Positions 2,441 through 53,927 are shown, counted from the stretch's first letter. The stretch is DNA of 57,509 nt from Octopus sinensis (GCF_006345805.1 NW_021833072.1:1-57509); one strand, 5' to 3'. Made by a program: numbers and translations. The notes: generated from the sequence alone by a model not told the origin.

Positions 2441-2561
2441 ATGATGTCGTCTGGTTATCTTACGGTTGCCGAGGGGTCGTGGGGTTCCTCTCGTCTGCCT
2501 CGCAAGCTGTTGATGTCGGTCATGCTGATGATAGTGATGATGTATTCCTACACTTCAGCCT
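2441..2561 (+). CDS. Gene A exon 1: signal peptide MMSSGYLTVAEGSWGSSRLPRKLLMSVMLMIVMMYSYTSA
   Basis: ATG at 2441, 40 codons + 1 nt, donor gtaagt at 2562 (phase 1); basic-hydrophobic-TSA cleavage pattern; same-length paralogous exon at 29925-30045. Confidence 0.8.
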
Positions 2562-2935
2562 GTAAGTAAAGGACACTAACTTTATTTTCTCACCTCTAAC
2601 CTTTCTCTCTGTCCTCTCCGCCATCTCTCTCTCTCTCTCTCTCTCTCTCTCCCTCTCTCTCTCCCTCCCTCTCTCTCTCTCATCATGTACGCTGTATCTT
2701 GGGGACTTTAAAGTTTGCCGATCCCTTTTCAGAAGTGATTCGGATGATTTCTTCCAGAAGGAAAGAAAAGATGAATTATTCCAATACGCCATGAATTCAT
2801 ATAGGAAAATCTTATCCCCACCCCAGAACAAATACCCCTAAAACTTAGATTATATATTGTCACCCAATAAGTGAGAGTCACATGGTTCAATTTCCATTAG
2901 TGAACCTGTTCTTCTCATTGTCCTTTTGCTTTATA

Positions 2936-3319
2936 TCTCTCTCTATATAAAGCTGAAGTTGTCTTCAGTGTATGGCATGTTTGGAAGCCTTCAACTAACA
3001 CAATCTCCTCCGAGACCCTGCGGTGCAAGTTGACCAAAATTGAGAGTATGATAGAAGAAGGCTTGCTCTTCATTCCGTAGAAGAAAAAATTCAAATCGAA
3101 CCATGTTAACACCACTTATTTACATCAAAATGGTGCTTTTTTCTATGAAAATCCCTATTTTTTACGATCTTTTGACTGCTGTGTCGCCATTTTTCGGTGT
3201 CTTTCAACCAGAAAAATGTTCACTTAAAGAGAATAACAAACTACAAAATTTTTACTTTTCAAAAATTCCAATTCTAAAGGGTCGAAACAAACCCGAGCAA
3301 TGCCGGGCGATACTGCTAG
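2936..3319 (+). mobile_element. Non-autonomous Helitron-like element
   Basis: Starts TC, ends CTAG, inserted between A and T, subterminal GC hairpin cccgagcaatgccggg; related copies at 39882-40258 (-) and 46264-46655 (+). Confidence 0.7.
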
Positions 3320-3860
3320 TTTCAATATAAATAAGTAACTCACACCTTTTAGCAAACAGATGACAATTTTTTTTTGTAGTCAGCGACCCAGAATTAGTAA
3401 TAATCGGGTGGTTCGTAGGTTTAATGTTTGTATTCGTAACCTGGCATTTGTTTCTGTAACTATGAAGGCGACGAACAGCGCCATCTGAATTTAATGCTCG
3501 TCTGTTAAACCGAACGATGATGAATGGCTGGTCATTTGGTGCAGGAAGATGGAAGACACCAATGCATAGGGAACAAGACTGGAAGACCAGACGACAGAAA
3601 GAATCGGTACATACTCAGAGTTCACAGAAGCTCCTCAGTAGGCCTAGCATAGCGATGGACACCTTATGGTAGTCTTTCATTGAAAAAGAAGAAATTGAAG
3701 AAAAAATAACAATAGCAACACGACTATGTCTTCTATCTCATTGATCCACAGTATAATGGAATAACGAATAGAAAGCATTAACAGTAAGGTGTAGTATTAT
3801 AGCTTGTGGGTGTGAGGTCAATTGACGTGTTAGTTAAGCTTCTATAACCTGTCTGGCTAA

Positions 3861-5838
3861 GGCGGCGAGCTGGCAGGAACGTTAGCACGACGGGCGAAAT
3901 GCTTTGTGGTATTTCGCACGCCGCTGCGTTGTAATCGACTTAATACGTTTGTCTGCCCTTGTTTGTCCTCTCTGTGTTTAGCCCCTTGTGGCTAGTAAAG
4001 AAATGGGTATTTCGTCTGTTTTTACGTTCTGAGTTCAAAATCCGCCGAGGTCGACTTTGCCTTTCATCCTTTCGGGGTCGATAAATTAAGTACCAGTTAT
4101 GCACTGGGGTCGATGTAATCGACTTAATCCGTTTGTCTGTCCTTGTCTGTCCTCTCTGTGTTTAGCCCCTTGTGGCTAGTAAAGAAATAGGTATTTCGTC
4201 TGCCGCTACGTTCTGAGTTCAAATTCCGCCGAGGTCGATTTTGCCTTCCATCCTTTCGGGGTCGATAAATTAAGTACCAGTTACGCACTGGGGTCGATGT
4301 AATCGACTTAATCCGTTTGTCTGCTCTTGTTTGTCTTCTCTGTGTTTAGCCCCTTGTGGGTAGTAAAGAAATAGGTATTTCGTCTGTTTTTACGTTCTGA
4401 GTTCAAATTCCGCCGAGGTCGATTTTGCCTTCCATCCTTTCGGGGTCGATAAATTAAGTACCAGTTACGCACTGGGGTCGATGTAATCGACTTAATCCGT
4501 TTGTCTGCTCTTGTTTGTCTTCTCTGTGTTTAGCCCCTTGTGGGTAGTAAGAAATAGGTATTTCGTCTGTTTTTACGTTCTGAGTTCAAATTCCGCCGAG
4601 GTCGATTTTGCCTTCCATCCTTTCGGGGTCGATAAATTAAGTACCAGTTACGCACTGGGGTCGATGTAATCGACTTAATCCGTTTGTCTGCTCTTGTTTG
4701 TCTTCTCTGTGTTTAGCCCCTTGTGGGTAGTAAAGAAATAGGTATTTCGTCTGTTTTTACGTTCTGAGTTCAAATTCCGCCGAGGTCGATTTTGCCTTCC
4801 ATCCTTTCGGGGTCGATAAATTAAGTACCAGTTACGCACTGGGGTCGATGTAATCGACTTAATCCGTTTGTCTGCTCTTGTTTGTCTTCTCTGTGTTAGC
4901 CCCTTGTGGGTAGTAAAGAAATAGGTATTTCGTCTGTTTTTACGTTCTGAGTTCAAATTCCGCCGAGGTCGATTTTGCCTTCCATCCTTTCGGGGTCGAT
5001 AAATTAAGTACCAGTTACGCACTGGGGTCGATGTAATCGACTTAATCGTTTGTCTGCTCTTGTTTGTCTTCTCTGTGTTTAGCCCCTGTGGGTAGTAAAG
5101 AAATAGGTATTTCGTCTGTTTTTACGTTCTGAGTTCAAATTCCGCCGAGGTCGATTTTGCCTTCCATCCTTTCGGGGTCGATAAATTAAGTACCAGTTAC
5201 GCACTGGGGTCGATGTAATCGACTTAATCCGTTTGTCTGCTCTTGTTTGTCTTCTCTGTGTTTAGCCCCTTGTGGGTAGTAAAGAAATAGGTATTTCGTC
5301 TGTTTTTACGTTCTGAGTTCAAATTCCGCCGAGGTCGATTTTGCCTTCCATCCTTTCGGGGTCGATAAATTAAGTACCAGTTACGCACTGGGGTCGATGT
5401 AATCGACTTAATCCGTTTGTCTGCTCTTGTTTGTCTTCTCTGTGTTTAGCCCCTTGTGGGTAGTAAAGAAATAGGTATTTCGTCTGTTTTTACGTTCTGA
5501 GTTCAAATTCCGCCGAGGTCGACTTTGCCTTTCATCCTTTCGGGGTCGATAAATTAAGTACCAGTTACGCACTGGGGTCGATGTAATCGACTTAATCCGT
5601 TTGTCTGCTCTTGTTTGTCTTCTCTGTGTTTAGCCCCTTGTGGGTAGTAAAGAAATAGGTATTTCGTCTGCCGCTACGTTCTGAGTTCAAAATCCGCTGA
5701 GGTCGACTTCGCCTTTCATCTTTTCGGGGTCGATAAATTAAGTACCAGTTACGCACTGGGGTCGATGTAATCAACTTAATCCCTTTGTCTGTCCTTGTTT
5801 GTTCCCTCTATGTTTAGACCCTTGTGGGTAGTAAAGAT
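3861..5838 (+). repeat. SINE family C head followed by 10 tandem copies of a 184-bp SINE body unit
   Basis: ggtatttcgtctg recurs at 4006, 4190, 4374, 4557, 4741, 4924, 5106, 5290, 5474 and 5658; single head ggcggcgagctggcag at ~3861. Confidence 0.9.
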
Positions 5839-51771: not shown

Positions 51772-52410
51772 TTTTATGTTTGACTTTTGCTTTATATTTG
51801 TACAAGTTGGCTCCAAGTCTCACCCAGAGACCTCAAGACACACAAGTTAGAAGTTCATGTTGGTGCTATGCCTAGTGTGCCATATATTTGGGGTTTTTTT
51901 TAGTGTTGTACTAGTGAATGTCTAAAAAACAAAACATACGGAAATTATGTTTGTTTTAAAACTTGAGATTTCATAGAAAGTATTTTGCGTAGGATATGAG
52001 CAGTTCCCATGAGCACTATCTTTTGAATTTCTGCCATTTTGGGGTTTCCTGGTATCTGAGTTAGGTAGCAATTAGTCCCTTTCGCTATCATTCCCAGGGC
52101 ACCTATGACAACAGGTATTGTTTTAGTCTTCAGGTTCCACACTTTGCTGATTTCTATTCCAAGATATTTATACTCGCTCAGTTTTTGGTAGGTCTTGACA
52201 AATAGTTTATATCGATGGGGACAGTCATATCAATGAGGAGGCATGTTCTTTGTCTGAAGTCTTTCATATGATATGTCTGGCCTATTTGCATCTATCTTTC
52301 TGTCAGTTTGAATGGTGAAGTTCCAGAGGAGTGAGATGCGGTCATTTTCAAGCACTGGGGGTGGTTTGTGTTCCCACCAGTTTTTTTCATGGGGTAAATC
52401 CAGGTTTTTA
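51772..52410 (-). mobile_element. 5'-truncated R4/Dong-like LINE (family 2) in (TAT)n
   Basis: MWNLKTKTIPVVIGALG...GTAHILRKILSM plus the same 3' UTR end (aagtcaaacata) as 14439-16078. Confidence 0.88.
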
Positions 52411-52484
52411 TGATTATTATTATTATTATTATTATTATTATTATTATTATTATATTATGTTATTATATTATTATTATTATTATT

Positions 52485-53076
52485 GAGTGAGAGAGCAGTG
52501 CATGCCATCAAAGTGACACTGGGGTGTAAAATATACGAAGCCCAGTATACCCATCATGACTACCCGTCTGATAAGGGTACACCAGGCACATGCATCACAA
52601 CCATATGTGCGCGATATGGTGATCTCATATCAAGATAAACAGCACATGACCTTGCAGGTGGGGCCCAGTTAGAATTTTCTTCAGGTTGAGTAGCCCATCC
52701 CGCTCAAAAGGTCCCGAATAAGGGTTGTTTAAGGATGTTGAAAGAACCACCCATGTTTCCAGAGGTGAATTATTCAAACCCTAAAGAATCCCCTTCAACA
52801 CATGGCTATGATGCTCCCCCACTACTTCTGCTCGTGATCAGAGATGCACATATCGTCAGCCACTAAGGGACATGCTCAACTGGTTAAGGTCAAACAACTG
52901 ACAAGCAAATCTGTGGTATTGAGCAGAATATTTGCTGTAGCCCATCTTTTATACCAAGACAAAACAATGTACATGATAACACTTCCAATCAGTTAAGATC
53001 AGAAGCCATGAGAGTCAATGCCTGGTACTGCATCAGGGCATTTTAGTCAATGCCTGGTACTGCATCAGGGCATTTT
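52485..53076 (-). mobile_element. Non-coding ~555-bp element in (TAT)n, copy 3, with a 32-bp terminal tandem duplication
   Basis: agtcaatgcctggtactgcatcagggcatttt occurs twice at 53013-53076. Confidence 0.75.
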
Positions 53077-53591
53077 ATTATTATTATTATTATTATTATC
53101 ATCATTATTATTATTATTATCATTATTATCATTATTATTATCATTATTATTATTATCATCATCATCATCATCATCATTATTACTATTATCATTATTATTA
53201 TTATCATTATTATCATCATCATCATCATCATCATTATTATTATTATTATTATTATCATTATTATTATTATTATTATTATTATTATCATCATCATCATCAT
53301 CATTTTATTATTATTATTATTATCATTATTATTATATATTATTATTATTATCATCATCATCATCTCATCATCTCATCATCATCATCATTATTATTATTAT
53401 TATCATCATCATATCATCATCATCATTATTATTTTATTATTATTATTATTATTATTATTATTATTATTATTATTATTATTATTATTTTCTCCTCACTGAG
53501 GCCCAGGGCTCAAATTTTTAATGAGAGTTTAAATTATAAAATTTTAAAATGTTAAAGGTGTGAAAAATATCGACGAAGATGGTGAACTGAC

Positions 53592-53927
53592 CTTCCAGAT
53601 ACTTTGGACTGGAAACATCTGAGTCATTTAAAGAACATTGGTACGATGTTGCATCGCTGCAATTGAGTTTGTTTTTCCAGCACTCAACCTCACCATAATC
53701 TGATCCAGGGGACAAGGAGAGAGAATAACAAAAGAAAGTATTTATTTTTTTTAAAGTTATAAAGTGATTCTTCGTTTTGTTGAATTCCATCCGGACAACT
53801 TCGGTGTTGTTTTGAAGAAGGCTAAACGTGGTTAAGTTGCTCGCTTTATATCGACATTTAATCCTCAGACTTCTTAGATCTCCAATAGGGAATCTATCAA
53901 CCGGTGATAATTCTGTTACTTCAATGG
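53592..53927 (-). CDS. Gene C Ig-like D1 exon
   Basis: 336 nt open, phase 1-1; IEVTELSPVDRFPIG...IKC...FFC...EVECWKNKLNCSDATSYQC; donor ag|gtcagt; acceptor is A15-CAG. Confidence 0.82.

Follow-up and report, generated by a model that had tools for sequence, protein, structure and literature searches.

Three paralogs of an octopod-restricted family of small, probably GPI-anchored immunoglobulin-superfamily proteins on an Octopus sinensis scaffold

CD48 and CD58 of the CD2-SLAM group consist of a signal peptide, a V-type immunoglobulin (Ig) domain, a C2-type Ig domain and a glycosylphosphatidylinositol (GPI) anchor. The group has mixed GPI-linked and transmembrane forms, its genes are found in clusters and it evolves fast. 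In a scaffold of Octopus sinensis (GCF_006345805.1 NW_021833072.1:1-57509; this whole stretch of 57,509 nt is called the window) we found three paralogous genes, designated A, B and C, whose family resembles the CD2 group in these respects, the GPI anchor being a probable feature. We estimate a probability of roughly 0.7 that the three belong to an octopod-restricted family of small cell-surface proteins of the Ig superfamily, likely GPI-anchored, which evolves by birth and death and has a role in recognition. The likeness to CD48/CD58 is an analogy: membership in CD2/SLAM was rejected, and similarity in sequence was not found. In the CD2 family the canonical disulfide between strands B and F is missing from the V domains, while the first octopus domain (D1) keeps this pair and has three Cys more. 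The CD2 family is also restricted to vertebrates, and the family described here to octopods.

The B7/butyrophilin and nectin/CADM proteins also begin with a V-like Ig domain, next to which they have a CD80-like domain of the C2 type, as the second octopus domain probably is. The octopus proteins differ in having these two domains only, in a unique framework of five plus three Cys and in a GPI-type tail, where the other families have a transmembrane segment with a PDZ/4.1-binding or B30.2 tail. Orthology to them is not detectable, and the octopus proteins stay below all Pfam Ig thresholds. Membership in nectin/CADM was rejected because the octopus proteins have just two Ig domains and lack a cytoplasmic tail; the sole link is an alignment to a Biomphalaria protein with an E value of 4e-6. 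The Dpr/DIP and IgLON proteins are likewise small, Ig-only surface proteins with multiple paralogs, many of them GPI-anchored, but they are made of two to three I-set/C2 domains and not of V plus probable C2. Purifying selection acts on these families, which are conserved between phyla or classes. A relation to Dprs and IgLONs had been proposed in a sequence-only reading of the window. Exhaustive HMMER searching with a family profile retrieved no Dpr, DIP or IgLON among its matches (the source was looked up for about 30 of 43), and the likeness is one of architecture only. Membership in Dpr was rejected on this result, and membership in IgLON was rejected also because IgLONs have three C2/I-set domains against two (V + C) here. 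In octopus, the clustered protocadherins form a lineage-specific expanded family of neuronal adhesion proteins, comparable to the present family as a tandem expansion of cell-surface recognition genes (PMC10084454). They differ in that cadherin repeats are encoded in one large ectodomain exon instead of one Ig domain per phase-1 exon; neural expression is documented for protocadherins and not for the Ig family.

The exons were mapped by six-frame reading, self-BLAST and splice-site inspection. All 11 exons of the sequence-only reading were located at coordinates that fit its lengths. They are given below with the second Ig domain named D2 (a slash marks the splice junction); the last line is a coding piece of the RefSeq model LOC115229977.

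2441-2561, plus strand: gene A signal exon 1, 121 nt; start codon and MMSSGYL...YTSA; phase-1 donor T/GTAAGT; first exon of LOC115229977 isoform X2
6947-7258, plus strand: gene A D1 exon 2, 312 nt; V-like Ig with five Cys; acceptor TTTATAG/, donor G/GTCAGT
17988-18305, plus strand: gene A nominal D2 exon, 318 nt; homologous only over 18043-18305 (the 3' 263 nt); donor A/GTAAGC
19168-19262, plus strand: gene A tail exon, 95 nt, encoding ASSAPSGIAYTKCILVVNLILLLLVAAISR and a stop; GPI-signal-like C-terminus
29925-30045, plus strand: gene B signal exon 1, 121 nt; MMFRGYT...YTSA
38382-38711, plus strand: gene B D1 exon 2, 330 nt; V-like Ig; donor G/GTCAGT
39506-39823, plus strand: gene B D2 exon 3, 318 nt; C-type Ig with FKC...W...DKC...SC; acceptor TTTTCAG/, donor A/GTAAGC; used in the isoform X2 model
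41619-41715, plus strand: gene B tail exon, 97 nt, reading GSADASSGIQYYKWVLVANLILVLLVVTISH and a stop; 98 nt in orthologs
53927-53592, minus strand: gene C D1 exon, 336 nt; V-like Ig; acceptor CAG after an A15 run, donor G/GTCAGT
50200-49883, minus strand: gene C D2 exon, 318 nt; one extra Cys
49100-49006, minus strand: gene C tail exon, 95 nt, encoding RCNTGSVTQFSKWVLVINLIILLLAVAISR and a stop
44494-44514, plus strand: terminal coding piece (IPLDVN and a stop) of the isoform X2 model, inside a block of about 1.6 kb conserved downstream of A and B

The same junctions are found in gene models of O. vulgaris and O. bimaculoides (P0001, P0002 and P0004) and thus in three Octopus species. The unusual GTCAGT donor 3' of D1, pointed out before as a shared feature, is shared by all three window copies and by each O. 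vulgaris or O. bimaculoides ortholog that was checked. The D1 exons of the three paralogs match each other with E values of 1e-15 to 1e-25 (tblastn), and the exons are single-copy and not members of repeat families. Genes A and B are both on the plus strand, in head-to-tail order. Gene C is on the minus strand, convergent with B as in O. vulgaris, and not in tandem with it as had been described. In an intact gene each phase-1 exon encodes a single module: first the signal peptide, then a V-like domain with five Cys, a C-type domain (probably CD80-like C2) with three Cys and a short C-terminal stretch that is probably a hydrophobic propeptide. The proposed identical phase-1 architecture of all three genes is not supported: the exon lengths are as given, but in the window D2 of gene A is broken, the tail of gene B is frameshifted and the signal exon of gene C lies outside.

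The ectodomain of O. vulgaris gene B, 97% identical to that of the window, was modelled with AlphaFold2 from a six-sequence alignment. The model is all beta with 16 strands (predicted local distance difference test, pLDDT, 85.6; predicted template modelling score, pTM, 0.77). A Foldseek comparison to the PDB gave more than 1000 matches at E<1e-3, all of them V+C two-domain Ig chains, including antibody Fab fragments, T-cell receptors, SIRP-alpha, the butyrophilins BTN3A1 and BTN2A1, and CD4. Whole-chain TM-scores were low because the inter-domain angles differ. The window's gene B D1 exon, modelled with 26 family sequences, reached pLDDT 93.4 and shows nine strands by DSSP; its closest structures in Foldseek are VH/VHH antibody domains (TM-score 0.58-0.67). 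Thus both Ig domains proposed for each protein were recovered in the models, and the suggested AlphaFold/Foldseek check for an Ig beta-sandwich returned Ig chains exclusively. The nine strands of the D1 model match the count of a V-set domain, which includes C' and C'', and the motif D-x-G/A-x-Y-x-C is present (EDVGEYRC, QDVGLYSC and SDATSYQC); Trp of strand C is replaced by Phe. The Cys pair of strands B and F is invariant, and the all-beta models fit the two-sheet sandwich of the Ig superfamily. Ten positions, including all five Cys, are invariant among 26 D1 paralogs with identity to window B D1 down to 24%. D2 carries the pattern FxC...W...C plus the DKC Cys, and its model has seven strands with a tight C-C' hairpin. 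The Cys pattern reported earlier stands for the five Cys of D1 and the three of D2 including DKC, with the correction that the last spacing in D1 is x7 and not x8.

The models place the odd Cys of D1 at the base of that domain, in the loop between strands E and F, and the DKC Cys at the upper end of D2, where strand E begins. An inter-domain disulfide between these two otherwise unpaired residues is topologically plausible and would probably form. Cys67 and Cys81 are on the neighbouring D and E strands. The 26 D1 members gave Pfam matches to ig, Ig_2 and V-set below threshold (best E 1e-4), and the full-length relatives also have no Pfam Ig match above threshold. A sequence search of the PDB with the family profile gave weak matches, all to Ig domains. 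The nearest non-octopod relative is a multi-Ig protein of Biomphalaria, automatically named 'cell adhesion molecule 2', which aligns over both domains with the family profile (hhalign, the E value given above) and has both the E-F-loop Cys and the DKC Cys. Its domain equivalent to D2 passes the threshold of Pfam C2-set_2 (PF08205), to which an Argonauta relative has only a weak match (E 0.03).

A word-indexed protein search detected six octopus proteins only; the whole family became visible only in the exhaustive HMMER search with the family profile, which covered 1.84 billion representative sequences. At E<1e-3 this search found 43 representative clusters; the E value is 1e-10 or lower for 34 of them. 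Every strong match with a name comes from O. sinensis, O. vulgaris, O. bimaculoides or Argonauta hians, in good agreement with the predicted lineage-specific expanded family; the 13 matches whose source was not identified look octopus-like. The weak tail of the search consists of generic Ig proteins, canonical ones among them, and a bacterial Ig-like repeat protein. O. bimaculoides has at least 13 named loci, and at least 19 D1 units can be counted in the O. vulgaris gene models. With a single exception, the identified members are on one chromosome-scale contig per species, and member numbering suggests at least two separate groups on it. The exception is a transmembrane member on another contig of O. 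vulgaris, with a relative of the same automatic name in Argonauta, and it may be an older form.

The ratio of nonsynonymous to synonymous substitution rates (dN/dS) was calculated by the Nei-Gojobori method between O. sinensis and O. bimaculoides, where dS is about 0.25. For D1 it is 1.01 in gene B and 0.95 in gene A; for D2 it is 0.54 in gene B, 1.01 in gene A and 0.48 in gene C; the gene C tail gave 0.32. The D1 surface changes about as fast as silent sites. The open reading frames and the invariant Cys framework across deep paralogs indicate structural constraint on the family taken as a whole. In the 5' ~200 nt of D2, A and B of the same species share 83-98% identity, compared with 74-85% between orthologs (17988-18305 and 39506-39823 in the window against loci L001, L002, L003 and L005). 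Over the last 118 nt this is reversed, orthologs being closer than A and B of one species. Such a switch within one exon is the signature of gene conversion between the D2 exons of A and B. The family would evolve by birth and death in arrays mostly on one chromosome, with exon-level gene conversion, introns bloated by transposable elements and occasional decay.

Two of the window copies carry lesions. The 318-nt D2 'exon' of gene A has no AG acceptor (TATATGC/ATG) and contains an in-frame TAA at 18038-18040. It can be aligned to the intact exon of O. vulgaris or O. bimaculoides only over 18043-18305; in place of the acceptor and the first ~53 nt, the window has ~70 nt of unrelated sequence that follows a TATG microsatellite. 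In O. vulgaris the gene A D2 exon is intact, with a normal TTTTTCAG acceptor and an open frame. The TATG/CATA microsatellite (17297-18017) abuts the broken 5' end of the exon, which suggests repeat-associated damage or mis-assembly there. Gene A D1 has an in-frame 18-nt deletion relative to O. vulgaris gene A (window 7080-7110; IENN------EIK against IEYNERFNIFEIK), which leaves one predicted strand in the V-like domain incomplete. When D1 is joined straight to the tail, signal, D1 and tail splice in frame into 175 amino acids (aa), and the O. vulgaris gene A model (P0012) consists of exactly these parts. The window copy of gene A is a pseudogene, or else it encodes no more than a single-Ig product. 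In gene B the lesion is in the tail. A phase-1 exon that closes on the stop must be 95 or 98 nt long; the 97-nt tail exon has lost one nucleotide at its start (ACAG/GGGATCT in the window, ACAG/AGGAATCT in both orthologs). Being 1 nt short after a phase-1 donor, it places the conserved GPI-type tail out of frame, and gene B is frameshifted unless the scaffold carries a 1-base error.

Gene C looks intact as far as the window extends, and its D1 is 98% identical in aa sequence to that of O. vulgaris. A signal exon for gene C was not found in the window by tblastn or by a scan for a start codon, hydrophobic core and phase-1 donor. In O. vulgaris, a candidate is located 6.8 kb upstream of C D1 (locus L004, 2946-3051), which corresponds to ~1.5 kb past window position 57509. 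This exon is 106 nt long and in phase 1, encodes MMSPNYINFRLPIRLLIMMMIMIVAIVISPCSSSD and ends at the donor ACG/GTAAGC. The encoded sequence matches the signal peptide of P0014, a full-length C-type paralog of O. bimaculoides, and splicing to D1 gives ...SSSD-A-IEVTELSP as in P0014. The existing gene C models of O. vulgaris and O. bimaculoides are truncated at the 5' end and do not include this exon.

In A, in C and in the orthologs of B, the tail has stretches of small residues, a spacer of 5-9 residues, 15-16 hydrophobic residues, two more residues and the stop. This is the layout of a GPI signal, as had been suspected; in the B copy of the window it is out of frame. The hydrophobic propeptide most likely directs GPI anchoring of the A/B/C-type proteins. 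Alternatively, they could be single-pass type I membrane proteins with nearly no cytoplasmic tail, since the C-terminal hydrophobic stretch could cross a membrane and two family members (P0017 and P0022) are genuine transmembrane proteins with cytoplasmic tails. We consider this alternative quite unlikely. The stretch is short for the purpose and interrupted by Asn, the two residues after it do not provide a basic stop-transfer cluster, and the small-residue runs ASSA, DASSG and NTGS are located 7-10 residues upstream, at the expected omega site. The transmembrane paralogs are clearly different in appearance, with a hydrophobic stretch of ~23 residues, then RKK/RKR, then a cytoplasmic tail. 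In a second subfamily the hydrophobic tail is of another kind but equally terminal, and some members carry mucin-like Thr/Pro stalks. With GPI anchoring, the mature protein would be an N-glycosylated, lipid-tethered rod of ~215 residues, in which the V-like domain is membrane-distal and may point outward as the binding face.

Given the lesions, one may ask whether the window holds a decaying remnant in which A and B are pseudogenes of O. sinensis. We regard this as possible, though rather unlikely. The broken D2 and shortened D1 of gene A, the frameshifted anchor signal of gene B, the dN/dS of about 1 in both domains of gene A, and the LINE and SINE (long and short interspersed element) insertions that make gene A 16.8 kb long, compared with 3.9 kb in O. 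bimaculoides, would all be expected of dead copies. On the other hand, intact orthologs are present in O. vulgaris (97% identical) and O. bimaculoides, and on a short unplaced scaffold, indels and small mis-joins are plausible assembly errors. Gene A still yields its in-frame product of signal, D1 and tail as modelled in O. vulgaris, and the three window exons of gene C have open frames and hardly differ from their O. vulgaris counterparts. A more radical doubt is that the exons are chance open frames or look-alikes derived from repeats, in a window dominated by SINEs, LINEs and microsatellites and with no Pfam domain above threshold. We give practically no weight to such an artefact, and it was rejected: orthologous exons with the same splice sites are found in three species, the structure models are confident, the Cys framework is invariant across 26 paralogs and the exons are single-copy.

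As for function, a Dpr/DIP- or IgLON-like neuronal code can be considered, in which GPI-anchored Ig proteins label neuron classes and set synaptic partners by homophilic or heterophilic binding. The family has the same architecture of signal, Ig domains and GPI-type tail, it has many clustered paralogs, and protocadherins, another neuronal adhesion family, are expanded in octopus (PMC10084454). The exhaustive profile search, however, showed no sequence relation to Dprs, DIPs or IgLONs, and the domains are V plus probable C2 here and I-set there. Wiring families are strongly conserved, but the octopus binding domain evolves at a dN/dS of about 1, and lesions and gene conversion are seen. The neural-wiring role that had been put forward for the family fits poorly with this rate and with the turnover of genes, and we consider it improbable. 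The fast-evolving V domain makes binding of variable partners likelier than a conserved synaptic wiring code. The role of the family would most likely be recognition of the immune, self/non-self or gamete type. A bolder interpretation, to which we attach a small probability, is that of diversifying receptors specific to octopods, in which a disulfide-rigidified, GPI-linked V-C2 unit is paired with transmembrane relatives for polymorphic immune or self/non-self recognition, possibly on hemocytes or in skin and suckers. If true, the octopod receptor array would be an independently evolved invertebrate analogue of the vertebrate SIRP/CD2/B7-type receptor families.

Several points weigh against a surface-recognition family with birth-and-death evolution, which we prefer. 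The D1 dN/dS of about 1 could mean relaxed constraint instead of diversifying selection, and the D2 rates are confounded by gene conversion. Two of the three window copies are not intact, and the locus may be partly non-functional. No transcript contig encoding the proteins was found and no expression evidence; the RefSeq model on this scaffold, a chimera as described below, may have been guided by homology and not by RNA data. The octopus proteins do not reach the threshold of any Pfam Ig model, and those of the window have noise matches only. The evidence for GPI anchoring is a sequence pattern, and the absence of the family from squid, cuttlefish and nautilus depends on the content of the protein libraries. 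Few lineage-specific expansions have been described in octopus besides protocadherins, zinc fingers and GPCRs. The Ig family consists of compact surface proteins in which the structural framework is fixed and the outer domain evolves fast. If it marks immune or self-recognition cells, it would offer a receptor candidate much needed in cephalopod immunology; if it is neuronal, it would be a second recognition family beside the protocadherins.

The locus had been called hidden and not a recognized named gene. In fact it is already modelled in RefSeq as LOC115229977, with orthologs annotated as LOC106882738, LOC106878948 and LOC106882739. Some of these are labelled 'Ig-like domain-containing protein' in UniProt, which suggests that another automatic annotation method recognizes them. 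When the spliced gene B product was used as protein query, only Octopus proteins were found, among them O. sinensis LOC115229977 isoform X2 (P0003). This protein is reproduced residue for residue by joining 2441-2561, 6947-7258, 39506-39823, 41619-41749 and 44494-44514. The RefSeq isoform X2 is a chimera of A and B: it joins the signal and D1 of gene A to the D2 of gene B and then follows the gene B tail in the shifted frame to 41749, before the terminal piece at 44494-44514. For annotation this means that the RefSeq model of this scaffold merges parts of two genes and reads across a frameshift. Literature searches by LOC identifiers, UniProt/XP accessions and topic words found no paper on the family.

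The blocks of about 1.6 kb downstream of the A and B tails (20048-21688 and 43323-44865) are 82% identical to each other and about 80-85% identical to O. bimaculoides. Such a block is probably a 3' untranslated exon of the intact gene or a regulatory block. The A-B gap (19262-29925) is 10.7 kb in the window and ~50 kb in O. vulgaris (OX597833.1, 2.859-2.910 Mb; L005 and L001). In O. bimaculoides the A and B orthologs are ~560 kb apart, with paralog P0020 beside A. The difference in A-B spacing is due either to structural variation or to a collapsed or mis-joined scaffold. The D1-D2 intron of gene A contains a non-LTR (long terminal repeat) retrotransposon on the minus strand (9517-13206) with an intact 1229-aa reverse-transcriptase open reading frame (Pfam RVT_1). 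A truncated second copy is located in the same intron (14634-16052, minus strand), and related fragments are found near 51631-52409. The first intron of gene A contains 10.4 tandem copies of a 184-bp unit at 97% identity (3930-5841). This SINE-like unit is also found at 6105-6588, 27197-27676, 41138-41502 and 49257-49691, and in the orthologous loci. The first intron of gene B carries a 2.6-kb CA-rich tract of low complexity (33084-35719).

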